From the NCBI GenBank assembly GCA_002269645.1, contig NIVC01000414.1, positions 310,001 through 374,000 on the forward strand: DNA of 64,000 nt, written 5' to 3'. Made by a program: the position numbers and the translations under genes. This DNA comes from Macrostomum lignano (Eukaryota). Of the stretch, positions 12,116 to 63,870 are shown piece by piece. Under the pieces are notes generated by a model, which was not told the origin of the DNA, did not search any database, and worked only from the letters and a program-made list of their open reading frames with translations. Position 1 is the first letter of the stretch. Each line of letters begins with the position of its first letter.

Positions 12116-12128
12116 AAGAGCAGCTCAC

Positions 12129-16819: not shown

Positions 16820-17989
16820 ATGATGCAGCTACAGAAGCTTCTCAACATGGCACTACTGCTAGCAGTTTTGCTAGCAGACAGAGCACACAGCTCAGATGAT
16901 GCAGGACAGCCAGCACCGGAGTCAGACTCTCCAGACTCCGAGGATTTCACTCCGGAGCAGCTAGCCAAGGCCCGGTCAAATTTGGACAAACTTTTCGACG
17001 AGAAACTCGACGCAAATCGAGATGGGAAGGTGAGCCGTCAGGAGCTGATAGCATGGCTGGCTGAAGCCAACAGACAGCAGGCTGCTAGAGAGCTGGATGA
17101 AACCTGGCAAGCCTACAACCTGACCACTGATGGAGCAGACAGCTTCCTGGACTGGGACAGTCACGCTGCTCGCCGAGCTGCAAGCGTGGACACTGGAACC
17201 GCTTCCGGCTCGGAAGAGGAAAAGGCAAAAGCCAAGCAACAGCAGCAGGCGGAGTTCCAAGCCGAGGTGAAACGAGCTATTGATGAGGCTAGCAAGGAGA
17301 CTGGGATTGACAAAGCCGGCATCAATGTTGGCGTGCCGCAGATGCCACCTCCTGAGACACCGGAGCCGACAAAGTCAACAAGAACGGAAGCTGACGGAGG
17401 CGGCAGCGAGGCGGAGCATCAGCATCGGCTGGCGGTGGAACTCGGCCGCGATCGTCGACGCTGGGAAGCCGCCGACGAGGACGGCGACGGTCGGTTGAAT
17501 CGGCGCGAATTTGCGGCGTTCGCCCTGGCCGAGGGGGCCGCTGAAGGCGCCGCAGCGGCCTCGCCCGCAATGCGCCGGGTGCTGGCGCTGGAGGCCATGG
17601 AGCGGCTGGACTCGGACGGCGATGGCCGAGTGACCCTGGCCGAGTTCCTGGCCGGAGCACCGGCCGCAACCGATCCCAAAGCGCCGGACGAGGATGCCAA
17701 GAATTTCAAGGACGTCTGGGACGTGAACAAGGACGGCTATATGGACGCGGAGGAGATGGAGAAGATGCTGGATTATGTGGACTCGGCTGGACCGGCTCAC
17801 AGCAAGGAGGCTGAGGCTGAAGCTGAGGCGGCCGAGTTGGCCGATGAAGCTGACAGGCTGATGAAGACGGTCGATTCAAACCTGGACGGCGGTCTGAGCA
17901 AAGACGAGGTGCTGGCGAGCCTGACGGACTTCGCCGGCTCTGCTGCTACGGACTACGGCAGCTCGATTGGCATCCATGATGAGCTGTGA
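16820..17989 (+). CDS. CALU: Intronless CREC-family (calumenin/reticulocalbin-like) ER EF-hand Ca2+-binding protein, 389 aa, nested in IPPK intron 4
   Basis: N-terminal signal peptide; EF-hands DANRDGKVSRQE, DEDGDGRLNRRE, DSDGDGRVTLAE, DVNKDGYMDAEE, DSNLDGGLSKDE; CREC motif FxGSxATDYG; C-terminal HDEL; AATAAA at 18265 and 18274. Confidence 0.93.
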   Translation: MMQLQKLLNMALLLAVLLADRAHSSDDAGQPAPESDSPDSEDFTPEQLAKARSNLDKLFDEKLDANRDGKVSRQELIAWLAEANRQQAARELDETWQAYNLTTDGADSFLDWDSHAARRAASVDTGTASGSEEEKAKAKQQQQAEFQAEVKRAIDEASKETGIDKAGINVGVPQMPPPETPEPTKSTRTEADGGGSEAEHQHRLAVELGRDRRRWEAADEDGDGRLNRREFAAFALAEGAAEGAAAASPAMRRVLALEAMERLDSDGDGRVTLAEFLAGAPAATDPKAPDEDAKNFKDVWDVNKDGYMDAEEMEKMLDYVDSAGPAHSKEAEAEAEAAELADEADRLMKTVDSNLDGGLSKDEVLASLTDFAGSAATDYGSSIGIHDEL

Positions 17990-25810: not shown

Positions 25811-26449
25811 TTATAAATAGATAAAAAATGACTTTCTATTAGTTAACAGAAACTAAAATTAAACTAAACCCACAAAGAAGGCAAGCAAAAAATTTGACAT
25901 GTAAAATTGCTTAATAAAAAAGCCGGTATGAAAATTGACAGAACATATTTCTTTAACAATTTTATATTATAAGTCACTCATATTACCAGAAAAATATACA
26001 TGTAGCAGGATTGCAGTGCAGCAACACAGAGTAATTAAATTATTGAACTTTTTGTTAAATAAAACTGAGAAAATATTTTAGGTATTGTACAAATATGTTT
26101 CCATAGTAATTACGCATGCACAATATTTGTTTATGTACATACAGGTACAAACTCTGATTCAGATTAGTAATTGCCGCAATTATATATGCATATAAGACTA
26201 TACACATACTAAGTAACTGCTGAAACTAATCGACCAGATTATTTAAATTTTAAGCAATTAAAGTGTACACTCCACATTTTCGTTGGTTATAAACATGAAC
26301 CAAATATAAATATTTATATATCATATATTTTATTGCACGTTGTTAAATAGAAATAAACTGTATTTATCACAATTTAAGTTTATTGATTAAAGTTATCAGT
26401 GATTGCTGGGTCAGTAAGGTAAGGAAACTTAGATGGGATGGTATTAATG

Positions 26450-27640
26450 CGATCGGATGGGATTGATGGGATTGATAGGATGGGACTGATGGGTGGGAAC
26501 GATGGATGGGCCTGATGAGGTGGGACTGATAAGATGGGACTGATGGGATGGGACTGATAGGGTGGGACTGATGGGGTGGGACTGATGGGGTGGGACTGAT
26601 AAGATGGGACTGATGGGGTGGGACTGATAAGATGGGACTGATGGGGTGGGACTGATAAGATGGGACTGATGGGGTGGGAACGATGGGATGAGACTGATGG
26701 GGTGGGACTGATGGGGTGGGACTGATAAGATGGGACTGATGGGGTGGGACTGATGGGGTGGGACTGATGGGGTGGGACTGATAAGATGGGACTGATGGGG
26801 TGGGAACGATGGGATGAGACTGATGGGGTGGGACTGATGGGGTGGGACTGATAAGATGGGACTGATGGGGTGGGACTGATGGGGTGGGACTGATGGGGTG
26901 GGACTGATGGGGTGGGACTGATGGGGTGGGACTGATGGGGTGGGACTGATGGGGTGGGACTGATGGGGTGGGACTGATAAGATGGGACTGATGGGGTGGG
27001 ACTGATGGGGTGGGACTGATAAGATGGGAGTGATGGGGTGGGACTGATGGGGTGGGACTGATGGGATGAGACTGATGGGGTGGGACTGATGGGGTGGGAC
27101 TGATAAGATGGGACTGATGGGGTGGGACTGATGGGGTGGGACTGATGGGGTGGGACTGATGGGGTGGGACTGATGGGGTGGGACTGATGGGGTGGGACTG
27201 ATAAGATGGGAGTGATGGGATGGGGCTGATGAGATGGGACTGATGGGGTGGGGCTGATGAGATGGGACTGATGGGGTGGGGCTGATAAGATGGGACTGAT
27301 GGGGTGGGGCTGATGAGATGGGACTGATGGGGTGGGACTGATAAGATGGGACTGATGGGGTGGGAACGATGGGATGAGACTGATGGGGTGGGACTGATGG
27401 GGTGGGACTGATGGGGTGGGACTGATGGGGTGGGACTGATGGGGTTGGACTGATGGGGTGGGACTGATGGGGTGGGACTGATAAGATGGGAGTGATGGGG
27501 TGGGGCTGATGAGATGGGACTGATGGGGTGGGGCTGATGAGATGGGACTGATGGGGTGGGGCTGATGAGATGGGACTGATGGGGTGGGGCTGATGAGATG
27601 GGACTGATGGGGTGGGGCTGATGAGATGGGACTGATAATG
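26450..27640. repeat. 14-bp G-rich minisatellite (gatggggtgggact)
   Basis: Visible periodicity; explains the 409-aa SHPISP ORF. Confidence 0.95.
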
Positions 27641-28299
27641 TAAAAGCAAAAGGCTACAGAATTCCCAAGGCAACTAAAAGAAGCAAGTTAAAATTTATAA
27701 GCAGAAAAAATTAGCAAAGCCATTAGTAGGAAATGACTAACACCAGTTGATTTGGATAGAATATAAATCATAATGTATAGTGTCATGCCTAGCAACCCGA
27801 CAGACAATCAGGCTGAATGACAGTTTGATTCCACATATACAGCATTTACAGGAATCCATCATTGCTAAAGTTTTAGCAGGTAAAAAATTAAATTTTCAAT
27901 AAAGAAAGAAAGAAATATCGAATGTGCCAAAAAAATCGCCAAAAACGTAAATAGAGAATTTAAAGTTAAATAGAATCATAGAGAATCATTAAAACGCCGT
28001 TGCTAACGATCGAGTAGCTTAGCTCCTACTCATAGTAGTAGACAAACTATATAGCAATAAATAAACATGAAATGTACAGGTGCAGCAGTGAACCGGAAAA
28101 TCTGGGTGTACCCATTGCGCATTCATTTTGAAAAAAAAAACACATCAAACACCGGCTAAGAGTGCCTGCAGATTGATTAGTCAGTTAGTCAATTATTAAA
28201 TTTCTGGATTGAGCGCTTACTGAATCAATAGCCAGGTAAAAAGATCAATGAAAATAGCTATTTAATAACAGCTAATCATTTTATTATTACATCAATCCT

Positions 28300-36311: not shown

Positions 36312-38264
36312 GTTATCTCTCCTCCTCTCTCTACTCTCTCCCCTCTCCATTCTCATATTTCCTCTCCTCTCTCCTCACTCACTTCTCTACTTTTGTCTCT
36401 CCTCTCTCCTCTCTCCTCTCGTCTCTGTAACCTCTCCTCTGTTCTCTCTACTCTCCCATCTTTTATCTGTTCACTCTCGTCTCTGCTCTCTCATCCCCCT
36501 CTTTAATCTGGCATCTCTGTCTTATATGTTCTCTCACCTCTCTCCTCTGTACTCTTTTTCTTTCCCCTCTTTTGACTCCTCACTTTCCTTTCTCCTTTCT
36601 TCTTTTCTCTTCTCTTCCCTTTTCTATACTCTGTCTCCCTCTCTTCTCTCACTCCACTCTCCTCTATCCGTTATCTCTCATCTCTCATCTCTCCTTCCAC
36701 CTCTCATCTCTACAACCTTAGAGATGTAGAGATGTATCTTTATCTCTTCTCTCTTCCCTGTACTCTCTCATCTCTTCTTTCACCTGTTTCCTCTCTGCTC
36801 TCCTCTCTGCTGTCTCCTCTCTCCTCTCATCTGCAGCTCTCTGCTCTCTCATCTCTACTCTCTACTCTCGCTTTTCCTCTCTCCCCTCTTCTCTCCCTCT
36901 CTCTCATCGTCATCACCCCCTCATCTCTCCTATTATCTTTTATCTTTTCTTTTATCCCCTCTTTCGCTTCTCTTCTCTTCGAATCGTCTATTCCTTCTTC
37001 TTTCCACTCTCATCTGCCCCTCAGCCATGAGCTGGATTCTTTATCTGGCCTTTGAGGTAAAAGTCTGCCCATCCCTGCTTGGAAAGCCAGTTTGTGAGAC
37101 GTAGTACTCTCATGGTTGTTATCATGCTTTGATCACGTCAGTCATTTTTCTTGCAAATTTGCAGCCCTGAAAGGAATTTGGGTATCTTCAGCTCCACTGC
37201 AGTCTGCATCAGTCTAACAACCAAGGAAATACGCATTTCTTAGAAGGCCATTTAAAATTTACACGGTACCTTTAAACGAAACCTAAAATTTCCATGGTGT
37301 GCCTAATTTAGTAGGATTGTATGTATTTCATTGCATCGCATCGCCTTTTCATAAATCTTTCGCTTTTACAAACCATGCTGGTTAGTGGATTCCCTCGATT
37401 TGCCAATTGCCAATTGCCATCCACTGTTAAACTGCTGCAGAGTTTGCCAATACAGAGAGGAGGGCAGTGGTTAGAATTTCTCACTAAACTGTCATGGCTA
37501 AACGTAGCCTATCCACTCTGGGGGTGCAGAGAAGGCTATTAAAAAGTTATTCCAAAACACTGTACATTCGCTATGTACATTCAGTCCTATTGCCTGACCC
37601 TTCGTCTGGCTCTGGGGAATGAGTGAGTGAGTGGCACAAACAACAGAAAAAGCAGACAAACTTCACATGCTTACAGTTTCTTTTTCGGTTGAGTTACAGA
37701 GTTGAAACTTTACATTTAGATAGAGAATGAGTCAATGAAGAATTGTGTCAAGTTTGAAGTCAATCGCTTTACGTGGAGAAAACTTATGGCAGCTGAAAGT
37801 TAGTCAATTTTGAAACCCTTTTACACATCTGGGCCCAGATCGGGAAGAGAGGCAGGCGGGCGGAGGTTGGGGTGGTTGCTACGCTGAAAAAACAGCCTAA
37901 CTTTAAAAGTGCACAGCGGCTTTCAGGATTAACTTTGAGATTTGAAATTTTACACGATTGTGACAAAATAGTTGAAAATTGCCTGTGTCAAATTTGAAGA
38001 GAATCGGTAGAAGTGGAGCGGCGCTATGGAGGATTAAGTGAAAAAATCGCGCATTTTGAGCAGTTTTTTGTACTTTTAGGTAGGAAGACTTGAGTTTAGG
38101 AAATTAAAAGGTAGCCTAAGACATTCTCCGTAGTGAGTTTAGGGTGGGTGTAAAGTTTGGTGTAATTTGGTTGAGTGGTTTGGGAGTCCATAGCGATCAA
38201 AATTGTCCACACACAGACAGACAGACAGACAGACAGACAGAGTTTTGATTTTTATAGTTAGAGA
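35529..38264 (-). mobile_element. Non-autonomous Helitron, left copy of a head-to-tail tandem
   Basis: 5' TC followed by TCTAACTATAAAAATC and a (ctgt)n tract; 3' ccgcggg...aacagCTTG|T; CT-rich low-complexity body. Confidence 0.8.
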
Positions 38265-39204
38265 CAAGCTGTTGAAACCCGCGGATTTTGAACCCGGGGA
38301 ATTCCAATCCCCAGAACTACTTTTGCATGTATTCTGAAATCTAAGACCATACACAAACAAATTAATGTTAGTAGGATAGAGGTAGACATAAAATGGAGCA
38401 CATTCGTGTAAAATTAGAGTTTGAGGCAAACTTTGATATTGTTTGCTGGGGTACTCCACAGAATGCCAGGCAATGTCTGTCTCTGACTCTAAAACATGTA
38501 TTGGCAAACTCTGGCCTCTCCCTGACTCTCCTATGTCCCTTGGATCCTTTAAAATTTCTATCGTCTCTCTGTTTCCTTTCTTCTCTCTCATTCCTTGTCT
38601 CTCGTCTCTCCTCTCTCTTCTCTCCTCTCTTCTCTCGTATCTTCCCTCATCACTCCTCTCTGATCATCTCTCTTATCTCATCTCTTCCCTATTCTTTTCT
38701 CTCTCCTCTCCTCTCTCCTTTCTACTTTTCGTTTTCTCTCTGCTCTCCTCTCTCCTCTCTACTCTTTCGTTTTCTCTCTCCTCTCCTCTCTCCTCTCTCC
38801 CATCTTCTTTCGTATATTACCTCATCTTTCTTCTCTTTCATATCTCTTATCTCATCTCTTCCCTCTTCTTTTCTCTCTCCTCTCCTCTCTCCTCTCTCCC
38901 CTCTTCTCTCGTCTCTTCCTTGTCCTCTCTATTCTTTTCTCTCTTCTCTTAACTCTCTCCTCTACTCTCTCATCTCTCCTCTCTACTTTTTCCTCTCTCT
39001 CTCATCTCTACTCTCTTCTCTCGTCTCTTCCCTCACCTCTTTCCTCTCTCTCTTTCCTCTCATCTCTTTTCTTGTTTTATCTCTTCTCTCTCCCTCGTCG
39101 CTCGTCTCTTCCCTCACCTCTCTTCTCTCTCGTCCGCTCTTTCATCTCTCCTTTCTCTTGTTTTATCTTTTCTCTCTTATCTCTTCTCGTTACTCTCTGC
39201 TCTG

Positions 39205-39252
<48 letters not shown>

Positions 39253-42200
39253 TCTCCCATCTCTCTTCTCTCTACTCTCTTCCCTCTTCATTCTCCTATT
39301 TCCTCTTCTCTCTCCCTGTCTCTCCTCCCTCCTCTAGTCTCTGTAATCTTTTCTCTCTTATCTCTCCTCTGTTCTCTCTACTCTCCCATCTCTCGTCTGT
39401 TCATCTGCTCTCTCATCTGTCATCTTTACTCTCTTATACGTTCTCTCACTTATCTCCTCTGTACTCTTCTCTTTCACCTCTTCTGACTCCTCTCTTTCCT
39501 TACTCCTTTCTTCTTTTCTCTTCCCTCTTCTATACTCTCTCTCCTCTATTATCTTCTCTTATCTCTCTGCACTCTCCTCTCACCTTTTTCTCTCGTCTCT
39601 TCTTTCATCTGTCTCATCTCTACAATCTCATCTCTTTCCTCTCTCCTCCTCTTTCCTTTACTCTCTCATCTCTCCTTTCTTCCCTCTTCTTTCACCACTC
39701 TCTTATCTCTATCTCTTCTCTTCTCACTCCTCTATCCCCCTCTTATCTCCTCTCTTCTCTATCCTTTCTACTCTCTCCTCTCTAATCTCTCCTCTCCTCT
39801 CGACCCTCTGTCATCTTTTTTCTGCTTTCTCATCTCTACTCTCTTCTCAATCTTCTCTACTCTACTCTCTCATCGATCCTCTGTCTCATCTCTCCCCTCT
39901 TCTCACCTTTACTCTTTCCTCTCCTTCCTTTCTCCCCTCCTCTCGCTTCTTCCTCCCTTCTTCTCTGCTCTCTCCTCACCACTTTTCCTTTTCACTCTCA
40001 TCTGGCCCGCAGCCATGAGCTGGATTCTTTATCTGGCCTTTGAGATAAAAATCTGCCAATCCCTGCTTCGAAAGTACTATCATGGTTGTTATCATTTCTC
40101 ATGCTTTAATCACGTCATTTTTCTGGCCAATTAGCAGCCCTGAGAGGAATTTGTGTATCTCCATTCTCCAGCTCCACCACCACAGTCTGCAGCAGTCTAA
40201 CAACCAAGGAAATACGCATTTCTTAGGAGGCCATTTAAATTTTAAAGTTACCTTATGCGAATCTTAATGTTAAAATTTTCATGGTGTAACTAATTTAGTA
40301 GGATTGCATTGTAATCAGTTATTCATTCATTTTTCGCTATTTTTATAAACCATCCCATATCGCCTTGATTTGCCATCCCTATTTAACTGCTGCGACTTGT
40401 CTATACAGAGGACAGTAGTTTGAATCTCTCGCTAAACTCTCTCCTCTCTACGCCTCTCCACTCGCGGGGTACAGAGAAAGCTATTAAAAAGTTATTCCAA
40501 AACACTGTACATTCGCAATGTACATTGAGCCCTATCGCCTGATCCTTCGCCTGGGGGAATGAGTTGGATGAGCGGCAAACAACAGAAAAAGCAGACAAAC
40601 TTCACATGCTTACAGTTTCTTTTTCGGTTGAGTTACAGAGTTAAAACTTTACATTTAGATAGAGAATGGGTCAATGAAGAATTGTGTCAAGTTTGAAGTC
40701 AATCGCTTTACGTGGAGCAAACTTATGGCAGCTGAAAGTTATTCAATTTTGAAACCCTTTTACTCTCCCATCTTTTATCTGTTCACTCTCGTCTCTGCTC
40801 TCTCATCCCCCTCTTTAATCTGGCATCTCTGTCTTATATGTTCTCTCACCTCTCTCCTCTGTACTCTTTTCTTTCCCCTCTTTTGACTCCTCACTTTCCT
40901 TTCTCCTTTCTTCTTTTCTCTTCTCTTCCCTTTTCTATACTCTGTCTCCCTCTCTTCTCTCACTCCACTTTCCTCTCTCCGTTATCTCTCATCTCTCATT
41001 TCTCATCTCTCCTTCCACCTCTCTCATCTCTACAACCTTAGAGATGTAGAGATGTATCTTTATCTCTTCTCTCTTCCCTTTACTCTCTCATCTCTTCTTT
41101 CACCTGTTTCCTCTCTGCTCTTCTCTCTGCTGTCTCCTCTCTCCTCTCATCTGCAGCTCTCTGCTCTCTCATCTCTACTCTCTCCTCTTGCTTTTCCTCT
41201 CTCTCCTCTTGCTTTTCCTCTCTCCCCTCTTCTCTCCCTCTCTCTCATCGTCCTCACCCCCTCATCTCTCCTTTTATCTTTTCTTTTATCCCCTCTGTCG
41301 CCTCTCCTCTCTTTGAATCGTCTATTCCTTATTCTTTCCACTTTCATCTGCCCCTCAGCTATGAGCTGGATTCTTTATCTGGCCTTTGAGGTAAAAGTCT
41401 GCCCATCCCTGCTTGGAAAGCCAGTTTGTGGGACGTAGTACTCTCATGGTTGTTCTCATGCTTTGATCACGTCATCTTTCTTGCCAATTTGTAGGCTGCA
41501 GCCCTGAAAGGAATTTGTGTATCTTCAGCTCCACTGCAGTCTGCATCAGTCTAACAACCAAGGAAATACGCATTTCTTAGAAGGCCATTTAATATTTACA
41601 CAGTACAGTACCTTTGAAAGAAACCTAAAATTTCCATGGTGTGCCTAATTTAGTAGGGTTGTATTGCATTGCATGGCATCGCCTTTTCATAAATCTTTCG
41701 CTTTTACAAACCATGCTGGATAGTGGTATTAGTGAATTCCCTCGATTTGCCAATTGCCAATTGCCATCCACTGTTAAACTGCTGCAGAGTTTGCCAATAC
41801 AGAGGGGAGGGCAGTGGTTAGAATTTCTCACTAAACTGTTATGGCTAAATGTAGCCTCTCCACTCTCGGGGTGGAATTCCAAAACACTGTACATTTGCTA
41901 TGTACATTCAGCCCTATCGCCTGACCCTTCGTCTGGCTCTGGGGGAATGAGTGAGAGGCACAAACAACAGAAAAAGCAGACAAACTTCACATGCTTACAG
42001 TTTCCGTCCTGATTGAGATACAGAGTTGAGACTTTACATTTAGACAGAGAATAAGTTAATGAAGAATTGTGTCAAATTTGAAGTTAATCGCTTCACGTGA
42101 AGCAAACTTATGGCAGCCCAAAGTTAGTCATTTAAAAACCTATTTGCACCCTTTGCCCAGATCGGGAAAGAGAGGCAGGCGGGTGGAGGTTGGGGTGGTT

Positions 42201-53470: not shown

Positions 53471-56152
53471 TAGCATTAGCAGATTCAGCAGAATGTTATA
53501 AAAGATTGGGAAAGAAGTAAATCAAAGCAATTGATGCTCATGTAGAATCAATAAAGGTCACAATTTTAATTCAATAATAAAGTTCATTAGTAAGAAGTTG
53601 TTACATTTGCATGACCATTGTCATAAACAAAGAGATTAATTAGGCATTTAGGTAAATTCAAATATATTCCTAATTTTGTAACTTTTCTTTATTTTCTTCA
53701 TATATTTTGCTCTTTCTTTGCATTTTTGGTCATTGACATTGCCATTATGTTAACAATGAATTTGTCATGTTAAATTATAAAAGTACTCATATTAATGCAA
53801 ATCCATTAATCCATTAGTTCAAAAAATCTGAATGGCATTCCATTAGCAATAATAAAAAATCTTAATGCTTATTAATGCTTAATAGCAGATTAACACTTAT
53901 TAATGGACTGGTACCCAACACTGGGCCTGAGTGGTCTAAGGTACATATATTTCTTTAGTCTTTTAAGTGTTACTCAGAATATAGGGTCATAGCAATAAGC
54001 AATGCAGTATATCTTTGCATGAATCCCTAATTCTTATTTCTTGGTAAGTTTCTGAGCACTTTCAAATGTTCAGCCTTGAAATAAGTACCTCATTAAGACT
54101 TTATGTTTATTGAAAATATGGGGTTTGAACCATTGTGTGAGCATATAGATGTTCAAGAGCTGAGATGTTGGTTTATTTAGGGCAGAATTTCACTTGTATA
54201 TATCAATTGGATTTAGGGAGGCACATTTATAACAAATAATAATGATCAAAATTATTTCAAGTATTCAAACAAACTAAAATGATATCTCTAGATTTTGCAC
54301 AACTTTAAAATCAAAAGTATTCAAGTGTAAAATAAAAGTACTTGGGTGCAAAATGTTTGAACAGTTGTATATTATAAGTGCATTTGTATTCAAAGGGTAG
54401 AATTTTATAGATAGAACAATTATTAAAATGCAGGCAAAGTAAAACTAAATGGTTATTACTAAATATAGGCAAAAAGTAAATTGGTAAGTAATGTTTATGA
54501 TGCAAGTTCTTAAATCTAGTTGTCACTTAGTCTTTTAGAATTGGCATGGGTGTAGCAGATCTCAGTAGTATAACCACTTGATTTGGTCAAAGAGCTAATC
54601 AATCTCAATATTGATCAGCTAATGATTTGGTGGTCAACAATTACTGCGGAAATTCTAGTGCATGTGATCTGCCACATCTTGTAGGATAGCAACTGCCTCC
54701 TTATGAGACTACTGTTCTTTCAGAAATTTGCCGCTTGACTAGATCTTGGAGGCCTATGGTAGTTGCTGATACATATCCAGACAAAGAAACACTAAAGTCA
54801 GCATGTGTTATTGGAAATTGTAGCATAGCCTCTCTATATCAGGGCTGCAGGTTTTGATTAATCTGTGCATGACTCTGCAGAAGTTGGCTACCTCCTTTGG
54901 TGGTAATTGTCTCTATCTTGGCAATGAGCTCAGCTGCAGTGATGATCTTTGCTGCCACAGTGGCAAGTTTCTAGGACTCTGTCATGGTTACACTTTATGG
55001 TATGATTTACTTTATTGTGATATCATTATTGGCTCCAAGGAGGCTATTGATGCTGGCAGCTCTGTCAAAGTGTCTTCAAGCATTTGGAGGTGGGTGCAGT
55101 TGCTGGAGCCTCTATCTAGATGGTGCGGCCACCAGTGGATGGAACAGCCCTAATTACCATTGACCTCACTGGGATGGCAACTTGCAAAGCTAGTAGTATG
55201 GCCCTCTTTTTCCTTGGCTCTTCATTAGTTGTAGCTAAGGGCAATCTCTTGGCTTTTCTCCTAGGCATTAAAGGCTTGGTTGGGATGCGCAAAGGCGCCT
55301 TGTTTTCCTGATCATTCAGCTTCTCAACTGGCTTGGCAGCTGGCAGATTTGGCATAATCTCTAATAGCTCTTCTAGAGGCCATAAAGACAAGTTCAGGAT
55401 GTCGTTGTTGCAACCTATGCTAGCTCTTAAGTACTGATCCTTAGTATAGCAACTCTACGCAATTAAATTCTCAGTATAGTAATTCTTAGTATGATACTCT
55501 AGTAAGGTTCTCTTTGAATAGAGGAGGAGTTTGGCTCTGTGAAATATGGAGCCTTCTGGGCTGCAGGGGTCCATATTTATAGGCTAGCAAGATAGGGCCA
55601 ATGAGACACATTAAGATCTAGAAATTCACACTTGCACAAGATATTTGGATCTGGCTAATAGCTTTCAATCAATGCTGTGAAGTAGAAGAGATACGTGAAG
55701 AACACTGGAAGCAGGAACTGCTAGCTAATTTGGACTTGTCTACTGCATTTGTAGTGGTGTAGCACCTGAATCTGCCAGAAGATCTCAAATAAAAAGAGTT
55801 CAAAGAGCAATTGATTGAGCAATTTAGAAGAATTGGTAGTTCCACAGAGAGGAATTTCAAGGAAGAATGCAAGGCAGAAATGAGCCTATAGAGACTTTAG
55901 TAGACTATTTGATTGAGTTGGCATAGCATGCATAAATGTTGAGCAAAAGGAAGAAAATATTGTAAAGCAATTCATCATGAATTATTTTGACTAGGTGACC
56001 CTCAAGAGGGCCATTTATGAGAATTTTAGCTTTAGAAAAGCCAGGGAACTACAAAATTAGATTGAGACCATTAAATAAAGATTATTTAAAGCAATATAAG
56101 ATTGGTAATAATCATCATTCATCATTCAAATGACCAAATGTAAGATTATATA

Positions 56153-56517
56153 GGCACGGGGGCCGTAGCCCAATGGTAGTGCAGCTGCTCTGGTGTGCCA
56201 ACGACCCAGGCTCGATTCCAAGTGCAGTCACATTAATTTGGGGCTGAATTGGAATCTTGGCTTGGCTCTGCTTGTGCAATTAACAGCCTTAAGAGCCAAC
56301 CCCCCCAAGGCGCAGTGAAGTGTACATGCTTAATGATAATATAAAGTTAGTGCCGCTGTACACTCCTGTGTGAGTGTATGCCTGTGTACATATCCACACA
56401 CTTGTATGCCTGCTCAGGGGAGTCAGTGGAATGGGCAGTAATGCCTCTCGCCAGTTATGTGCCTATGTTGTATAAAGTGCACCAGGGTGCACACAACCCC
56501 CCTGTCTCTAAGTAAAT
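56153..56517 (+). mobile_element. tRNA-derived SINE
   Basis: A-box tagcccaatgg (56166), B-box ggctcgattcc (56209), body and AT-rich tail; related copy at 57632-57995. Confidence 0.8.
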
Positions 56518-57631
56518 ATCTATATAGAAGATATACTAGTTACAGTAGTTACTAGAGTATTTAAATGATATATTTTATTATTCAGCATTGTCAAACAACC
56601 CTATTCTTCTTTTTTTGCTAGTTCAAAATAGCTTTATACTTATTTGAAATATTATAATATTGATGGTTTAGACTATTTACTTAATTTTATTACTTAATTT
56701 AATCTTATGAATGCTACCAAAGTTATAATAAGGGTGTTGGTTTTATCTTCTAAAATAATTTCATTGTTGATAGCAAAGTTGTGCTAGGGGTAAATCTTTC
56801 TCTAAATTTCAATTGTTGCCACTAAACTATAGTAAAAAAACTCTATTTCTTTAAATTCATCTGAGCATTTGCCTAAGTGCATATCTAAGTATTTATTATC
56901 CTTTATTGGTAATGTTTCTATTCTATACCAATAGCATTATATATAAATATGGCTTGAGTAGTATATATACTCTAATGGCATATGTACTGCATGTATGATC
57001 TTTTTAGTCCTAGGCATTACCAAGATTAGAGGGTCATGGCCTCTGTACACGATATGTATTATTAGGGATCTACTTTGTATCCCTTTTTCATTAGTATATG
57101 CAGTATGCATATTTTCTCCTAAGTCAAAATCACTTCTCAAAATATTTGTTAGGAATTCACTGTAAAGTTTCTCAACTAACCAGTAAAAGGCTGAAGGCTG
57201 ATTTGAAGCCTAAAAGTGAGACTTGCTTCTCATTGCAAAAAATGCATATATTTATACTAATTTTTGGCTCTTTAAAACAAACTAATTGGAAAAATATTTT
57301 AGAAAATTTAAGTACTTAAACAAAAGTTTTCTTAGTTTTTGTGCACGTTCAAAATGCATATATTTTACAAATTTTTGCATAAAAATGGAAGCCATTAATG
57401 TAGTTTCTACAAACTTATTAGGTTATAAAATGAAGTTCAATTTTTTATAGATTTTAGAGATTCATATTTTGGCAAAGTTGCTATTTTTTTCTTTATTGTC
57501 TTTTACTATACAAGTAGATGTGCAATTAAAATATTGATATTTTTCTGGACAGTTTTTTATGGTTTATTTTACAGTTGGAAGCTTTCTATAATTTTATGGC
57601 TATTGTATCATAATATGTATTGTTAGCATAA

Positions 57632-57995
57632 ATATAGATTTTGATTGAGCATTTGAGCAGGGGCTGTGTGCACCCTGGAGCACATTTAGCAACACTGTCA
57701 CAACTGTTGGGGAAAGATTACTGCCCATTCTGCCAATCTTGAGCAGACAAACAAGAGCACAGATACATATGTAGTCATATACAAAGACAGACACATCAAA
57801 GGCAGGTCCTGGCTTTATTTATATTCAGGCAAGTATACTTCACTGCACCTTAGGGTTGATCTTTGAGAGCATTGAATGGACAAACAGACTGAAGCCAAGA
57901 TTCCAATTTAGCCACAAATTAATGCAATCTGCAATTGGAATTGACAGTGGTAACTAAATGTCAAACTGTGACTTTCTGCCGTAACTGCTGCCTCT
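57632..57995 (-). mobile_element. Diverged copy of the same SINE family in inverted orientation
   Basis: Shares attaatttg.ggct.aattggaatcttggctt, aagg.gcagtgaagt.tac, gaatgggcagtaat and ccagggtgcacaca with the + copy; head decayed. Confidence 0.7.
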
Positions 57996-60900
57996 ATGAA
58001 AACCAGAAGCAGCAATAGCAAGTCCCGCAAGAAACAAAATAGCAAACGCGCTGGCAACACCAGCAGTTCTTGTGGCGCCAAAAATGCAAAACCAGCTAAA
58101 AAATCTCGACAATGTAGAGCTAGCCGTTTTCGCCTCAGTGAGTTAAACTTGGCACCAGAGACCACTCTGTCGCTGAGCAGCAATAGCGGGCTGGGTGGCA
58201 TCTGTACTAGACGGAGCTCCCGATCTCAAACTCGCCTGCAGCAGCTCCAACAGTCTGCAGACAGCACACTGATCATTGGTGAACCAGAGCACCGTCCAGG
58301 GCCTCAGTTAAAACGCGGCGTGACCAGTCAGGTCAGGACTGAAGCCAACGACACCATGCTGAACTTGTCTGCCCCGGCTGTGAGTTTGAGTCGCTCAATA
58401 TCTGCTCCAGTTCGCGGCAGAGCAGCCAGACAGCATCTAGTAGTTGCCAAGCGTCAGAAAGCGGCTGCAACAACGATGGAAAGTCGATTTGCAGACGAAA
58501 GTAAAGCATCGCAGAAGGAGAACCAAGAGAAAGTTGAGGTTGAAAAGCCAACTGCAAGTTGTTGTAATAGGTCAGTTAGTGACACTCAAGAGCAGGAACA
58601 TCCTAGTGCAGCAGAAGTTGAGCATGAGCATTCAAGAATCGCAGCCTCACAAGCTGGCTCATTCTCTCGTGCATCCATGTCAACTGGCGTAAGCAACTAT
58701 GAAAATCAGTCAAATAGCTCTGTAATGGCCAGTACAAAGCTGTCAGACTTGGAAGGCAATGTGGTTCAACCTGAAGTGACTCAAGAGTCTAAAGCCGATA
58801 CTTCTGCAGTCAAGTCAAGAGCAGCTGAAGTCGCTCCTTCTCGATTGGCTGACAACGAAGAGAGACGCAAATCTTGTGAATGTTTAAGCGTGACACAGTC
58901 CGCAGAAGCAACACCAGCAACTGCAGCATTGAGCGACAGAAGTGTCGCCGTGTCAGCTCACCCCAGCAACAGTCAAAATCAGTTAGATGGCTCTGTAGCG
59001 ATTAACACAAAGACTTCGGATGCAACAAAGACAGGCATTGAAGACAATGTGGTTCAATTAGAAGTTACTCAAGAGCCTAATGCTGGTGCTGCATATCAGT
59101 CTTTGTGCTTTTCTGCAGACGAGTCGAGCGCAGCTCAAGCTGATTGCAATGAAGCGAAGTGCAAGTCTAACGGTGAATGTTTAAGCGCGTCGCAAGCTGC
59201 AGAAGCAACACCTTCACCTGCTATAGTGAGTTTCAGTCAGAGCTTAATGAAGTTTGCTTCCACTGCCGCTTCCTCACAGCCTGACTCATTCCCTGGTGTC
59301 TCCATGTCGGCTCGAGCGAGTAACATTCAAAATCAGTCAGGTCGCTCTGCAATGACCAACGAATGCAATCGAACTTCGAGTGTAATTAAACCAGATATTG
59401 AAGACAGTGTAGTTCAATGGGAAGCTTCTCGAGAGCCAAATAATGCCACTTATCAGTCTATGTGCCTATCTTCTAACCAATCAAACAGAGATCAGGTCTC
59501 ACCTTCTCGATTGGCTGATTACAGCAAAGTAAGCTGCACGCCTAGCGAGCATGTTTACGTGTCAAAATCTGCAGAAGCAACATCATCCAAAACAATAAAA
59601 AACCAGGAGAGCTTCAGAAGACCTGTTTCCGTTGCCGCTTCCGGGTCTAGCCCAGTCTCTGGTGTCTTTTCATCGGCTCACGTTAGTAACATTCGAAATT
59701 CCCTTGATAGCTCTGTAGTTGCAAGCACAAAGACTTCGAATGCATTGAAGAAGACAGAGCCAAATGCTGTCACTTATCAGTCTTTGTGCTTCTCTGCAGA
59801 CGACTCAAGCGCAGCTCAGGCCTCATCATCTCGATTGGCTGATTACAGCCGAGTAAATTGCAAGTCGAGCTGTGGACGTTTAAGCGTGTCGCAAGCTGCA
59901 AAAGGATCAGCTTCATCTGCTACATTTGACGGCCGTAAGAGCTCGATAAAGCCTCTTTCCATTGTCGCTTGCGATCCTGACGCAGTCCCTGGTGTCTTCG
60001 TACCGGCTCCTATTAGCAACAGTAATAAATTGTTTCAAGCTCAGTCAGATCAATCAGAGGCCACTAAAAAGCCAAACGCTACTGCATATCAATCTTTGTG
60101 CTTTTCTGCAGACGACTCGAGTGCAGCTCAAGCCTCATTTTCTCGATTGGCTGATTACAGCCGAGTAAATTGCAAGTCGAGCTGTGGACGTTTAAGCGTG
60201 TCGCAAGCTGCAAAAGGATCAGCTTCATCTGCTACATTTGACGGCAGTAAGAGCTCGATAAAGCCTCTTTCCATTGTCGCTTGCGATCCTGACGCAGTCC
60301 CTGGTGTCTTCGTACCGGCTCCTATTAGCAACAGTAATAAATTGTTTCAAGCTCAGTCAGATCAATCAGAGGCCACTAAAAAGCCAAACGCTACTGCATA
60401 TCAATCTTTGTGCTTTTCTGCAGACGACTCGAGTGCAGCTCAAGCCTCATTTTCTCGATTGGTTGATTGCAGTGAAGCGAAATGCAAGTCTACTGGTAAA
60501 TGTTTAAGCGTGCCCAAATCTGTAAAAGCAATATTGAAAAGCAGAGAGAGCTTGATAAAGCCTGCTTCCATTGTTGCTTCCGAGCCTGTCTCATTCTCTG
60601 GTGTCTTTGTTTCGGCTGACGTTGCGACTTATCGAAATCAGTCTAATAACTCTACAGTAGCCAGCACAGAGCCAATAGACTCTCCAGGCAAAGTTGTTCA
60701 GTCAGATGCGACTCAACAGTCAAACGCTGGCACTTATCCGTCTTTGTGCTTTTCTGCAGACTGCTCAAATGCAGCTCAAGCTTCATCTGCTCAAGTGGCT
60801 AATTACAACGAGCTGAGACGGGAATCAAGCGGTGAACTTTTAAGCGCTCCAGAGTCTGCAAGAGAAACATCCGCATCTGCTATGTTGAGTAGTAAGAGCT

Positions 60901-62723
60901 TGGCAAAACCAGTTTTCTTTGTCGCTGCTTCCCAGTCCTCTGGTGTCTTCACATCGGCTCATGCAAGCAGCAGTCAAAATCAGTCAGATTGCTCCGCAGC
61001 GGCTGGCACAAAGCTGACAAACTCAGACAGCAATAAGGATCAATCAGAAGCGATTCAGGATCCAAATGCTGGCACATATCACTCTCTGAGTGCATCTGCA
61101 GACTCATCTCAATTGGCTGAAGACAGCGAACTGAGTTGCCAGTCCAGTAAAGCTTTAAGCGTGTCACAACCTGCTGCAGCAACTGCCGCATCCGCAGTGC
61201 TAAAAATCAAGCCTTGCGCCTCAGACAGAAGCTCGGTAGATGGTCCCAGCTTCACCGAGTTCAGTCAGTCATCCAGCATGTACGCCACTGTCGATGCTGC
61301 CACCGTGAACGACTCGACCATTCGCCGGCAGTACCTCGAGTCGCTGCACGCGTCCGGCATGTACCGAACGATTGCGCAGGCGACACTCAGCGATAGCGAG
61401 ATCCGACGCCAGCTGCTGCCATCCGTTCGACGCAAATCGCTGAAGCGATCAGCAAGTTCAGCCGGACTGGAGTCATTTGTCACCGAGATGGAGTTCACTG
61501 ATAACAACGATGAGACTCGAGCTCGCTGTCTGCCGTCAGTTCTGCGCAGTAGCGCTTGCTCCGACACGAACGATGCGTACGAGACGATTTCTGAGACTAC
61601 CGTGAGCGACGATGAAGTCCGACAAAGATTAGTGGAGTCTGTACATCCGCTTGTGGCAGAGCGGTCCAGAGAAGCAGCTGATGCACCGACATTCGTCACC
61701 GAGGCTGAGTACACAGAGACCGACAGTGAGATCAGGCAGCAGCTTGTGCATTCGCTGCGAGCATCTCGATTGTACACCACAGTGGAGTCGGAGAAGACCG
61801 TGGATGATTCCTCAGTGAGGCGGTGGCACATTGCATCAGTTAGGCCTGAGCGGTCGCTGCCAGATGCCAACAGATCAGGTAGCCAAGTGCTTGAAGGTAC
61901 TTTCACTACAGAATGCGAGTTCACAGATGACGGCACAGCTACAAGAGCCAGGTGCTTGCCTTCTGTCCGAGCTGCTGGCTTTGATAGCAACGAATACGAG
62001 ACTGTGGCTGAGGCTACTGTGGCTGAAGATGAGGCCAGGCGGCAGCTGGTTGCATCGGTCCGTCCGCGGGCTTCTGTGGCTGAAGATGAGGCCAGGCAGC
62101 TCATCAGCGGAGCGTCAGCATCCCGAATATCAAGGACTCAAACCAGGGACGTACCATCCGTCTCTCCCAATGAGCCGAGCGTCGCCGTCTTCGAGACGGT
62201 GTCGGAGACAACGCTGAGCGACGACGAAGTCAGACGGCAGTTCATCGGAGGCGAAGCGGCGGCGGTCGAGCGGACTGCCGAGGCGGCGCCACCGTCGAAT
62301 CGTCGCCGGCATCGCCGAGCTTCCGCGGACTCGAGCTACTTCTACGACCCGCACGGCTGCCTGAGCCAGGAGGCCAAGTCCCGCCGGGTCAGCCTGGCGC
62401 CGCACCTGCTGCCGCTGGCCAGCTTCAGCTTCTTCTGCGACGAGCGCGGCCGCGAGTTCGACCTGTCGGCGCTCCGCCAGGTGAGCCTGCAGACCAGAGA
62501 CGTTGACGAGCAGCGGCTGGCCATCGAGGCCGCCGTGGCGAAGGCATCGCGGTGGAGCCGGCGGATCCGCAACAACCCGCCGGTGCGGCTACGGCCCCCC
62601 GGCAGCGTGCGGGTGTTCGGCTTTCTGCAGCACCCGGTGCGCATCATGGACCGCGTGCTCATCGGCTTCCTGGAGCCGGCGGAGCACCAAAGACTCAAGC
62701 GGCTGCTCGATGACCGTGGATGA
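57996..62723 (+). CDS. Intronless 1575-aa orphan protein: basic N-terminus, Ser/Ala-rich 104-119-aa repeats, about 25-30-aa 'DxExRRQL' repeats and a GC-rich C-terminal domain
   Basis: Uninterrupted 4728-nt ORF; repeat spacings are all multiples of 3; AATAAA at 63211. No family recognised. Confidence 0.85.
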   Translation: MKTRSSNSKSRKKQNSKRAGNTSSSCGAKNAKPAKKSRQCRASRFRLSELNLAPETTLSLSSNSGLGGICTRRSSRSQTRLQQLQQSADSTLIIGEPEHRPGPQLKRGVTSQVRTEANDTMLNLSAPAVSLSRSISAPVRGRAARQHLVVAKRQKAAATTMESRFADESKASQKENQEKVEVEKPTASCCNRSVSDTQEQEHPSAAEVEHEHSRIAASQAGSFSRASMSTGVSNYENQSNSSVMASTKLSDLEGNVVQPEVTQESKADTSAVKSRAAEVAPSRLADNEERRKSCECLSVTQSAEATPATAALSDRSVAVSAHPSNSQNQLDGSVAINTKTSDATKTGIEDNVVQLEVTQEPNAGAAYQSLCFSADESSAAQADCNEAKCKSNGECLSASQAAEATPSPAIVSFSQSLMKFASTAASSQPDSFPGVSMSARASNIQNQSGRSAMTNECNRTSSVIKPDIEDSVVQWEASREPNNATYQSMCLSSNQSNRDQVSPSRLADYSKVSCTPSEHVYVSKSAEATSSKTIKNQESFRRPVSVAASGSSPVSGVFSSAHVSNIRNSLDSSVVASTKTSNALKKTEPNAVTYQSLCFSADDSSAAQASSSRLADYSRVNCKSSCGRLSVSQAAKGSASSATFDGRKSSIKPLSIVACDPDAVPGVFVPAPISNSNKLFQAQSDQSEATKKPNATAYQSLCFSADDSSAAQASFSRLADYSRVNCKSSCGRLSVSQAAKGSASSATFDGSKSSIKPLSIVACDPDAVPGVFVPAPISNSNKLFQAQSDQSEATKKPNATAYQSLCFSADDSSAAQASFSRLVDCSEAKCKSTGKCLSVPKSVKAILKSRESLIKPASIVASEPVSFSGVFVSADVATYRNQSNNSTVASTEPIDSPGKVVQSDATQQSNAGTYPSLCFSADCSNAAQASSAQVANYNELRRESSGELLSAPESARETSASAMLSSKSLAKPVFFVAASQSSGVFTSAHASSSQNQSDCSAAAGTKLTNSDSNKDQSEAIQDPNAGTYHSLSASADSSQLAEDSELSCQSSKALSVSQPAAATAASAVLKIKPCASDRSSVDGPSFTEFSQSSSMYATVDAATVNDSTIRRQYLESLHASGMYRTIAQATLSDSEIRRQLLPSVRRKSLKRSASSAGLESFVTEMEFTDNNDETRARCLPSVLRSSACSDTNDAYETISETTVSDDEVRQRLVESVHPLVAERSREAADAPTFVTEAEYTETDSEIRQQLVHSLRASRLYTTVESEKTVDDSSVRRWHIASVRPERSLPDANRSGSQVLEGTFTTECEFTDDGTATRARCLPSVRAAGFDSNEYETVAEATVAEDEARRQLVASVRPRASVAEDEARQLISGASASRISRTQTRDVPSVSPNEPSVAVFETVSETTLSDDEVRRQFIGGEAAAVERTAEAAPPSNRRRHRRASADSSYFYDPHGCLSQEAKSRRVSLAPHLLPLASFSFFCDERGREFDLSALRQVSLQTRDVDEQRLAIEAAVAKASRWSRRIRNNPPVRLRPPGSVRVFGFLQHPVRIMDRVLIGFLEPAEHQRLKRLLDDRG

Positions 62724-62776: not shown

Positions 62777-62975
62777 GGGTAGCCAGCCTCCCAGATCCTC
62801 AGTTGCTGGGCCAGCCTCCCAGTTGCTGGGCCAGCCTCCCAGTTGCTGGGCCAGCCTCCCAGTTGCTGGGCCAGCCTCCCAGTTGCTGGGCCAGCCTCCC
62901 AGATCCTTAGTTACTGGGCCACCAGCCTTCCAGATCCTCAGTTGCTGGGCCACCAGCCTCCCAGGTACCCAGTTG
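62777..62975. repeat. 28-bp minisatellite family (ctgggccagcctcccagatcctcagttg), reverse complement of the 32158 array
   Basis: Direct sequence match to 32158-32729. Confidence 0.9.
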
Positions 62976-63749
62976 CAATTTCAATAATTTGTGCCCAATC
63001 AGCCACTACAGACTCGCCCACATGAACTGCATCGGCATGTCCTGAAGGTGCACTGCATCATTGTTACTCATGTTTTTAGCAATTCCATTTTCTTACACAG
63101 CTTTTTAATCTGAAATTTGCTCTGCTGGGCTGTCTGCCACTCTGTTAAATCGCGCAAATTAATTTTAAACTTTTATTGCAGAATATTTTATAACTTTTAC
63201 ATACTTTTACAATAAATTGACGTGCAGCAGGGTCATTGGGTCATGTTTCTATTGTGAAAGCATTTTTGTTAACTAAAAATTCTGGATATTTGTGCTGCTT
63301 TAAAATCAACCCAGTTTCATCCTCTACATTTTTTGTAGAAACAAGTTTTCCGTTTATACTACTGCCAACATTTTTAGTAGTAGTATAAATAGCATTAGTT
63401 TAAATTTGAATCATATTAATCTAATAATATTGCACATATTCGCGTCATAAAGTACCTTGTTATTGTTATTGCTGGGCCATGTTGTCATATTGTTATCTGC
63501 ATTGTTTTTAGATGCATTTTTAATGTATAATACGCTCGTAAATCATTGCTATTTGTTTATATTGTCGCTAGTTAAATATTTATTAGTGTGTCTCACAGCA
63601 GCTCAATGTTCAACTCCAGCTGCTGCACATGTACATTTCCATTTGTATAAATATCTGATATGAACATCCATTGTGTTTATTAGTGCTCACTTATTTATTC
63701 ATAATCCTGAGCTGTCTTCTCATGGCTTTTCTCACCACTCTCACTCACC

Positions 63750-63870
63750 TTCACCCATCTCCCTCTCACCCATCTCCCTGTCACCCATCTCCCTCTCACC
63801 CATCTCCCTGTCACCCATCTCCCTCTCACCCATCTCCCTGTCACCATCCCCCTCTCCATCTCCTTCCCCT
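63750..63870. repeat. 15-bp minisatellite (tcacccatctccctc)
   Basis: Visible periodicity. Confidence 0.88.

Follow-up and report, generated by a model that had tools for sequence, protein, structure and literature searches.

Module A, an array of nine head-to-tail repeat units within a 1575-residue orphan protein of Macrostomum lignano, still gains units by non-allelic homologous exchange (unequal crossover or gene conversion), and one unit was gained after the separation of the three subgenome copies of the gene. Substitutions in module A are close to neutral, while module B and the C-terminus of the same protein are under clear purifying selection. We judge it probable, though well short of certain, that module A represents a lineage-specific coding tandem repeat, near-neutral and homogenised, in an orphan M. 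lignano protein. As a repeat region it is ordinary and under weak constraint, and the motif scaffold proposed from an earlier inspection of the DNA (the sequence-only reading) is unproven. That reading had also called the array still expanding, and here it was correct: the homeologous copies do not all have the same number of units, and the additional one is a recombinant chimera.

The gene and its repeat array

The window, a stretch of 64,000 nucleotides from M. lignano contig NIVC01000414.1, carries on its forward strand a single-exon open reading frame at 57996..62723, complete including its stop codon; an in-frame stop at 57969-57971 lies 5' of the first ATG. GC content is 48-52% in the reading frame but falls to 34-38% over the 4 kb that precede it (54001-58000). 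Three subgenomes have been documented in M. lignano (PMC10733133), and the gene is one of three syntenic homeologous copies, the other two being Mlig027983.g1 and Mlig000416.g2. With three copies only, in syntenic flanks about 95% identical, the locus is unlike a transposon. The frame is intact in all three copies, and the indels that distinguish them, of 312, 57 and 12 nt, are all multiples of 3; the 57-nt in-frame indel is a repeat in module B. A re-analysis of RNA-seq data (PMC7336406 Table S8) gives 98, 130, 135 and 143 reads for Mlig000416.g2 in four body fragments and places the gene in the class "Non-Specific". Neither a described family nor an untranscribed locus with frameshifted copies was found when both were looked for. 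Full-text search of the literature for Mlig027983 returned no mention, and the gene IDs had no match in the accessible portions of the supplements of PMC5816591 and PMC5730564.

The encoded protein begins with a region of 145 residues (57996..58430) that is basic by its sequence, with a net charge of +21 and clusters of K and R. The protein has neither a signal peptide-like start nor any hydrophobic or transmembrane-like segment (maximum 19-residue hydropathy 1.28), and by prediction it looks intracellular. The suggestion of germline or adhesive/secretory expression finds no support in the even counts over the body fragments or in the N-terminus.

Module A follows at aa 146-1127 (window positions about 58431-61376), in units of approximately 105-120 residues. 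The pattern Y[QPH]S[LM][CS][FLA]S matches once in each of units u1 to u7, with Tyr codons at 59094, 59451, 59775, 60087, 60399, 60735 and 61077; the spacings of 357, 324, 312, 312, 336 and 342 nt are all in frame and correspond to unit lengths of 104-119 aa. Both the seven positions and the six spacings had been given exactly by the sequence-only reading. A leave-one-out profile scores each unit at 34-109 bits, against a maximum of 10.4 bits among 200 composition-matched shuffles per unit. The repeats as such were thus correctly recognised, but the extent first proposed, 58740-61200, is too short, because there is an extra 5' unit and because the last unit reaches about aa 1127-1130 by the unit profile. 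The same profile finds no further copies in six frames in the rest of the 64-kb window.

The outermost 5' unit, u-1 (aa 146-252; 58431..58751), is very degenerate, lacks the YQSLCFS core, and is detectable by the unit profile only, with a match at aa 146-258 (i-Evalue 3.5e-6) that lies outside the training set. It is followed by u0 (aa 253-357; 58752..59066), also degenerate, with ESKADTS in place of the core. This unit corresponds to the degenerate copy that the sequence-only reading had placed near 58780, and it is real, scoring 41.5 bits leave-one-out against at most 10.3 for shuffles. Pattern, alignment and leave-one-out profile all identify u1 (aa 358-476; 59067..59423). In u2 (aa 477-584; 59424..59747) the core reads YQSMCLS, or YQSMCPS in the other two copies. 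Three central units follow: u3 (aa 585-688; 59748..60059), u4 (aa 689-792; 60060..60371) and u5 (aa 793-904; 60372..60707). The core is YPSLCFS in u6 (aa 905-1018; 60708..61049), or YPSLYFS in the copy designated L002, and has decayed to YHSLSAS in u7 (aa 1019-1127; 61050..61376), whose tail runs into module B.

Similarity among units is not confined to YQSLCFS. The blocks SRLADY, C..LSVSQ, IKPxSIVA and GVFxSA also align, unit-wide, and the proposal that the diverged copies keep a hydrophobic and cysteine core holds insofar as the core is conserved but not insofar as it restricted conservation to the core. Amino-acid identity is 54-92% among u3, u4 and u5, compared with 34-46% for u0 and 29-38% for u7 to the other units. 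The outer aligned units are therefore the least similar, with u2 (38-41%) as an exception, and the motif has decayed in u-1, u0, u2 and u7. The edge units are decaying.

A recently gained chimeric unit

The third homeologous copy, L001, is without exactly one 312-nt unit, u4, which is present in both the window and L002. This unit joins the head of u5 to the tail of u3. In the window, u4 equals u5 at all informative sites from unit nt 1 to 81 and equals u3 from nt 92 on, so that the recombination junction falls within 60140..60151, just 3' of the motif-coding block; in L002, unlike the window, the switch occurs between unit nt 33 and 45. In both copies the tail of u4 has the u3 variants private to that copy (C at nt 176 in the window, T at nt 91 in L002), and the gain probably happened twice, independently, to judge from these sequences. 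Tandem Repeats Finder (TRF) describes 59775-60472 as 2.2 copies of period 312 with 97% matches. Together with the absence of the chimera from L001, this bears out the view that the 312-nt copies arose by recent duplication.

The exchange junctions lie in or adjoining the longest inter-unit DNA identity, which is the stretch encoding YQSLCFSADxSSAAQAS. Silent sites in this part of the unit are unusually well preserved. Among units, pS is 0.36 in the head block, lower than the 0.51 of the remainder (bootstrap P = 0.036), and the lowest synonymous divergence, with pS of 0.08-0.18, is found in the segment AAQASxSRLAD. Given the same residue, two units use the same codon in 87 of 97 pairs (90%) in the core, against 342 of 513 (67%) elsewhere. 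Over-conservation of synonymous sites in the core points to homogenisation at the level of DNA.

These observations suggest a history for the array. Its nine units would be an insertion between the basic N-terminus and the conserved module B and C-terminal region, and their number changes by unequal crossover or gene conversion in or beside the best-conserved block of DNA. The frame of the array may be kept open because a stop or frameshift would delete the constrained downstream parts. Homogenisation would then account for most of the conservation of the "motif", leaving room for no more than a modest amino-acid constraint in the central units, and the most likely role of module A in the protein would be that of a flexible polar spacer.

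Selection on module A and the case for a docking motif

Summed over the three copies, dN/dS in module A is 0.86 (21.5 synonymous and 60.5 non-synonymous changes), no different from neutral (binomial p = 0.51) and different from the rest of the protein (Fisher p = 0.001), where the values are 0.29 for the N-terminus (aa 1-212), 0.32 for module B and 0.18 for the C-terminus, the most constrained part. Replacements per codon between copies number 0.076 in the 22-residue core and 0.076 in the rest of the unit, although the core count is small, 10 replacements in 132 codons, so that these numbers could not reveal a two-fold constraint on the core. Replacements at core residues include C to Y, L to P, and, in unit 3 of one copy, Y to C. 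Because the genome is neopolyploid, redundancy of the three copies may have relaxed selection only recently. Divergence between units (pS about 0.5) far exceeds that between subgenome copies (dS about 0.04), and the persistence of the array despite this is compatible with some benefit.

The strongest competing explanation is that PNAxxYQSLCFSADxSSAAQAS is a selected short linear docking motif and that the array forms a multivalent scaffold or condensate region, its valency rising by unit gain. Several observations agree with it. Among units, no block is better conserved than the core, where pN is 0.14 as opposed to 0.39 in the remainder; polar sequence that has no confident fold is punctuated by aromatic and hydrophobic patches; a unit was recently gained; and the gene is transcribed, with the remainder of the protein constrained. 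The ratio pN/pS among units is 0.43 in the core and 0.81 in the rest, but pS is also lower in the core. For u1, u3, u5 and u6, which are the best preserved, pN/pS is 0.39 in the head block and 0.92 in the rest at similar pS (0.36 and 0.39), and the head-block differences are mostly synonymous, the pattern that selection on the amino acids of a motif would yield. With all six units, the contrast in pN/pS between head block and rest has a bootstrap P of 0.086. Amino-acid constraint is thus hinted at in four central units only. Against the docking motif stand the near-neutral dN/dS of the array across copies, the equal replacement rates in core and flanks together with the loss of defining residues, the decay of the motif in four units, the existence of a paralog without the array, and the over-conserved silent sites with exchange junctions among them, which homogenisation can explain. 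Preservation of a multivalent short linear motif by selection is therefore only weakly supported, and we regard a selected docking motif as possible but on balance unlikely.

A more elaborate version would make module A a functional "sticker-and-spacer" valency module, Macrostomum-specific and part of a probably nuclear protein, in which the Tyr/Cys/Phe core serves weak docking or self-association and independent unit gain in two of the three copies is an adaptive tuning of valency after the recent genome duplication. We find this doubtful. The periodic patches YQSLCF, IKPxSIV and GVF could provide weak multivalent contacts, and if they did, exact sequence would count for less than composition and valency.

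An AlphaFold2 model of the unit, built from a shallow alignment of 12 rows of paralogous units, has a pLDDT of 52, a pTM of 0.11 and no secondary structure. The composition of module A is 21% Ser, 14% Ala and only 19% hydrophobic residues. The Ser/Ala-rich, disordered context described by the sequence-only reading agrees with both results, and from the model the units are probably disordered. Several conserved blocks of alternating hydrophobic residues along the whole unit might have indicated a small folded beta-rich domain, with YQSLCFS, LSVSQ, SIVA and GVFVS as strands, but this is very improbable in view of the model, the composition, near-neutral change outside the head block, and the lack of any Pfam or PDB match.

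Relatives, module B and comparable systems

The view that the protein is an orphan without known domains stands. Pfam searches with the whole protein and with each part separately returned nothing above cut-off, and with the whole protein no match at E <= 1. In the PDB, no significant match was obtained with sequence profiles built on the unit, on module B together with the C-terminus, or on the C-terminus by itself, the best hits being ribosomal protein uS14 at E of about 1. An exhaustive phmmer (HMMER) search of 1.84 billion representative proteins returned only M. lignano proteins. Among these is the paralog P0003 (UniRef A0A1I8JIT1; 1335 aa), which is more distant than the homeologous copies. 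No Pfam domain supports the name that it carries in the database, "Histone-lysine N-methyltransferase ash1".

Module B (aa 1091-1440; 61266..62315) consists of about ten copies of a 25-30-aa motif, [YF]xT[VI]xExT[VL]xD[SD]x[IV]RRQ[LY]xxS[VL]. The conserved C-terminal region (aa 1441-1575; 62316..62720), with the signature SYFYDPH...RVSLxPxLLPL...NNPPVR...VRVFG[FY], shows approximately 50% identity to aa 809-927 of P0003; its AlphaFold2 model is of low confidence (pLDDT 44), too poor for comparing folds. P0003 shares both this region and module-B motifs (four copies), at 37-50% identity, but there the shared region is in the middle of the protein, ahead of a Gln-rich tail, and module A is missing: neither the unit profile nor BLAST found a match for it. 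Derivation of module A from module-B motifs was considered and rejected, as module A scores too low with the module-B profile to be reported, whereas 163 of the 300 shuffled versions were. A LEM domain in module B was likewise rejected: PF03020 reaches 15.6 bits, short of its gathering score of 24, and covers only positions 4-15 of the 40 in the profile, on "TLSDSEIRRQLL".

Intragenic tandem repeats whose unit number changes by unequal recombination are familiar from yeast FLO and other cell-wall genes, from involucrin and from mucin VNTRs. Module A resembles these coding minisatellites in its head-to-tail, in-frame units and in a copy number that differs between gene copies, in a chimeric new unit with its junction in the best-conserved block of DNA, and in central units that are homogenised while edges decay and substitutions are near neutral. 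It differs in its long units (312-357 nt), in the absence of a signal peptide and a predicted intracellular location, and in that homeologous subgenome copies of a neopolyploid, rather than population alleles, are compared.

Ki-67, a basic nuclear protein, has repeats of about 122 aa with a short conserved "Ki-67 motif". Unit length, a short core in disordered sequence, one uninterrupted coding stretch and basic regions are all echoed here, but the likeness is architectural only, for the 1575-aa protein is not similar to Ki-67 in sequence and lacks an FHA domain, a PP1-binding motif and the FKEL core, and K167R and FHA have no Pfam match at E <= 1.

The kinetochore protein KNL1 carries an array that has undergone recurrent, lineage-specific expansion, with central homogenisation and decay of other units, for which unequal crossover was proposed (Tromer et al. 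2015, PMC4558858). Module A shares with it a disordered array of short-motif units with expansion, homogenisation and decay. A very divergent form of a repeat-bearing chromosomal scaffold, either KNL1/Spc105 (module B being the MELT-like repeats) or Ki-67 (module A being Ki-67-type repeats of about 120 aa), would accommodate these parallels as well as the basic N-terminus, the sequences TEMEFT, TECEFT and TEAEYT in module B, and a "FAD...KEN" common to the protein and P0003. By the membership criteria of PMC4558858 (SILK, RVSF, MELT, and RWD domains with a coiled coil), however, neither the 1575-aa protein (P0001) nor P0003 has a match to [SG]IL[KR] (SILK) or [RK][VI]x[FW] (RVxF), and Pfam detects no C-terminal RWD domain or coiled coil. 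Strict MELT matches once (MEFT, aa 1165) and twice more when loosened; the three sites lie in module B, and module A has none. The conserved C-terminal region extends over only some 130 aa and sits mid-protein in P0003, homology to KNL1 is undetectable, the phmmer search yields no relative outside M. lignano, and the purifying selection demonstrable within species on KNL1 motifs contrasts with the weak signal in module A. With the defining motifs missing and the domains undetected by Pfam, both identifications are rejected and retain scarcely any probability.

That the locus is not a real gene, but a chance reading frame, pseudogene, transposon ORF or assembly artefact, is a reading with next to no probability, favoured by the want of homologues outside the species and of known domains, and refuted, as far as sequence evidence reaches, by a 4.7-kb frame open in three of three syntenic copies with indels in multiples of 3, dN/dS of 0.18-0.32 outside module A, reads in four RNA-seq libraries, a GC content well above that of the upstream DNA, and a paralog alike in module B and the C-terminus.

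As a near-neutral, homogenised coding repeat, the locus offers a clean, datable example of disordered repeat growth, of modest importance in itself. The three neopolyploid subgenome copies act as internal replicates, in which the same unit appears with two junctions, both at the motif-like block. DNA homogenisation can keep the "motif" of a young array similar, and any claim of a short linear motif should therefore wait for a check of conservation at silent sites. The analysis also flags a small, species-restricted family of M. lignano proteins sharing module B and the C-terminal region; because these parts are constrained, they would be better functional targets than module A.

Extent of the repeat array

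An ORF scan finds an uninterrupted reading frame of 1575 aa at 57996-62723 (+), with an in-frame stop just upstream of the first ATG and a GC content of 48-52%, versus 34-38% across the 4 kb upstream. All seven Tyr codons of the pattern Y[QPH]S[LM][CS][FLA]S lie exactly where the sequence-only reading had placed them, its motif spacings of 357, 324, 312, 312, 336 and 342 nt are reproduced exactly, and Tandem Repeats Finder reports 59775-60472 (period 312, 2.2 copies, 97% matches). Units are named u-1, u0 and u1 to u7 from the N-terminus. When the inter-motif stretches are aligned, similarity extends over the entire unit, beyond the core alone, with conserved blocks EPNAxxYQSLCFSADxSSAAQAS, SRLADY, C..LSVSQ, IKPxSIVA and GVFxSA. 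Each unit, tested with a profile of the remaining units, scores 34-109 bits, while 200 composition-matched shuffles of each unit stay at or below 10.4 bits. The unit profile adds one more unit, highly degenerate, at aa 146-258 (i-Evalue 3.5e-6); a six-frame scan of the window with it turns up no others. By motif scan and unit profile, the array, module A, comprises nine units at aa 146-1127 (58431-61376, +); it is present at the originally proposed 58740-61200, its true span being somewhat wider.

Several other features of the window were recorded. A 15-nt tandem repeat TCACCCATCTCCCTC at 63751-63856 (7 copies) translates to (SPISL)n within an ORF of 104 aa, a reading that is probably meaningless. 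Multiple strong EF-hand matches (EF-hand_1, E = 5.5e-22) mark a 389-aa ORF at 16820-17989 (+) as the probable gene, or a large exon, of a calcium-binding protein. Adjacent ORFs at 10628-11413 and 11482-12159 (+), each with helix-hairpin-helix and Gp5_trimer_C-type Pfam matches that may be repeat-driven, look like a repetitive or low-complexity paralogous pair. Very strong strand asymmetry in GC skew at 1-2000 (-0.64), 26001-28000 (+0.59) and 38001-40000 (-0.59, with an AT skew of -0.52) suggests simple or satellite-like repeats.

Gene copies and exchange between units

Matches in protein database searches are exclusively Macrostomum lignano entries. Two represent homeologous copies of the gene, L001 (PAA69356.1 / Mlig027983.g1) and L002 (PAA73223.1 / Mlig000416.g2). 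L001 is syntenic with the window, with flanks ~95% and coding part 96-97.5% identical, and dS between pairs of the three copies is 0.035-0.042. M. lignano is a neopolyploid for which subgenomes S, L1 and L2 have been described (PMC10733133), and three copies at this divergence fit those three subgenomes. The reading frame is intact in all three, and the indels among them (312, 57 and 12 nt) are each a multiple of three.

L001 lacks exactly one 104-aa unit. At informative sites, window u4 matches u5 throughout nt 1-81 and u3 from nt 92 onward, so that u4 is a chimera of a u5 head and a u3 tail, the product expected of unequal exchange between u3 and u5. L002 also carries u4, with the u5/u3 switch between nt 33 and 45, and each u4 tail shares the private u3 variants of its own copy (window nt 176 C; L002 nt 91 T). 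Two independent duplications are the most parsimonious account, the alternative being a single duplication with several later gene conversions; under either, non-allelic exchange has recurred since the subgenome split. Both junctions lie within or adjoining the motif-coding DNA, where u3 and u5 share their longest run of identity. Amino-acid identity to the remaining units is lowest at the outer aligned units (u0, 34-46%; u7, 29-38%), and u3, u4 and u5 are 54-92% identical among themselves. Diverged outer units with similar u3-u5 are the usual picture for unequal-crossover arrays, and a like pattern has been reported for the KNL1 repeat array (PMC4558858). The earlier description of the array as still expanding is thus borne out by a unit number that differs between copies and by an extra unit that is recombinant.

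Outside module A, L001 carries one more 19-aa (57-nt) repeat, VAEDEARRQLVASVRPRAS (alignment columns 1341-1359), in module B, the shorter-period downstream repeat, and a 4-aa insertion, ADSA, ahead of SYFYDPH, so small in-frame repeat gains happen there too. From ~80 nt past the stop codon, at 62800-62976, a 20-nt unit, CAGTTGCTGGGCCAGCCTCC, is tandemly repeated 5.2 times, together with a related repeat of 31 nt. This array is several-fold longer in L001 (14564-15132) than in the window and so likewise varies between subgenome copies.

A positional RNA-seq re-analysis counts 98, 130, 135 and 143 reads for Mlig000416.g2 (length 4743) in fragments A-D, fragment A being cut anterior to the testes, and classes the gene 'Non-Specific' (PMC7336406, Table S8). 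The gene has neither a neoblast nor a germline label (PMC7336406, Table S6) and is OvI_down in the octets-versus-isolated comparison (log2 fold change -0.98, adjusted p = 0.028; PMC7336406, S6). The gene is therefore transcribed. The reads are not confidently assignable to one of the copies because these are ~97% identical. An untranscribed locus or frameshifted paralogs, named in advance as evidence against the sequence-only reading, were not what we found: reads occur in 4/4 fragments and 3/3 copies are in frame. Its suggestion of germline or adhesive-cell expression is not supported by the same class, label and reads, fragments A-D showing nothing to indicate that expression is confined to testis, ovary or tail (adhesive organ).

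Selection on module A and its core

With changes summed over the three copies, dN/dS is 0.86 in module A (21.5 synonymous and 60.5 non-synonymous changes), 0.29 in the N-terminus (aa 1-212), 0.32 in module B (aa 1091-1440, 61266-62315, +; motif period 25-30 aa), which is under purifying selection, and 0.18 in the C-terminal region (aa 1441-1575, 62316-62720, +), where constraint is strongest. The substitution pattern of module A differs from that of the remainder (Fisher p = 0.001) and does not differ from neutral expectation (binomial p = 0.51). Replacements per codon are 0.076 in the 22-residue core and 0.076 in the remaining module A; those between copies in the seven-residue core include L->P and C->Y, and a Y->C in u3 of L002 is seen directly in the sequences. 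Among diverged window units, the nine-codon core has a pN of 0.14 versus 0.39 elsewhere and a pS of 0.33 versus 0.48, and same-residue pairs use the same codon in 87/97 cases in the core and 342/513 elsewhere. AAQASxSRLAD, just downstream, has the lowest pS of the unit (0.08-0.18), its pN not being low. Such silent-site conservation in and near the core is a signature of DNA-level homogenisation.

The stronger version put forward from sequence alone, that the array is a multivalent docking motif kept by selection, draws on the head block, the motif-bearing start of the unit. Its pN/pS in u1, u3, u5 and u6, the units kept best, is 0.39 versus 0.92 in the rest at similar pS, which favours some amino-acid constraint; over six independent units the values are 0.59 and 0.83 (bootstrap P = 0.086). 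To that extent the claim of a preserved motif is weakly supported, but the near-neutral dN/dS of module A and the equal replacement rates of core and flank speak against the rest, and we consider a selected docking array rather unlikely. We read the bulk of the unit as effectively neutral, the head block as at most modestly constrained in central units, and concerted evolution as the source of much of its apparent conservation. The open frame is no proof of module A function, because the constrained parts downstream would likewise be lost with any stop codon or frameshift in module A.

Protein family and proposed mechanism

The earlier remark that no known domain is recognisable holds: Pfam searches with the entire protein and with separate parts found no family, and PDB sequence searches found nothing significant. 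When aa 376-1575 were compared exhaustively by phmmer with 1.84 billion representative proteins, two proteins only came back, both from M. lignano: the L001 copy and a more distant paralog, P0003 (UniRef A0A1I8JIT1, 1335 aa; E = 1.6e-39), whose database label 'ash1' is without Pfam support. Module B and the C-terminal region are common to P0003 at 37-50% identity. The module B motif [YF]xT[VI]xExT[VL]xD[SD]x[IV]RRQ[LY]xxS[VL] occurs in ~10 copies in the window protein and 4 in P0003, and the C-terminal region, with the pattern SYFYDPH...RVSLxPxLLPL...NNPPVR...VRVFG[FY] and neither a Pfam nor a PDB match, is ~50% identical to P0003 aa 809-927. Unit profile and BLAST find no trace of module A in P0003, so module A is an addition specific to this gene; module B and the C-terminus define a small family, to date from M. 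lignano only.

In both paralogs 'FAD' is followed by 'KEN' within 6-11 residues (window 58488-58523, aa 165-176; P0003 aa 36-51); a conserved KEN-box degron is a possible reading, the local alignment not being significant by itself. The protein looks intracellular, possibly nuclear, because its N-terminus, with a net charge of +21 across 145 aa, is strongly basic and shows neither a signal peptide-like start nor a hydrophobic segment. AlphaFold2 gives a 12-row unit alignment a pLDDT of 52 and a pTM of 0.11 with no secondary structure, and models the C-terminal region poorly (pLDDT 44).

In its gain, homogenisation and decay, module A resembles coding minisatellites in general and the KNL1 repeat array (PMC4558858), and in layout it recalls the Ki-67 repeats. 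Membership is not supported for KNL1 (no SILK or RVxF motifs, a single MELT-type match), Ki-67 (no FKEL) and LEM (15.6 bits versus a 24-bit Pfam cut-off, covering 12 residues of one module B instance).

Module A is a coding tandem repeat, weakly constrained and probably disordered, in which units are gained and lost through unequal exchange seeded where its DNA is most conserved. In the mechanism we propose, the array may serve as a flexible polar spacer at most, its periodic aromatic/hydrophobic patches perhaps supplying weak multivalent contacts, and module B and the C-terminal region would hold the specific function. As a whole we find this account fairly likely, and we judge the locus to be an orphan gene with a lineage-specific, probably disordered repeat array.
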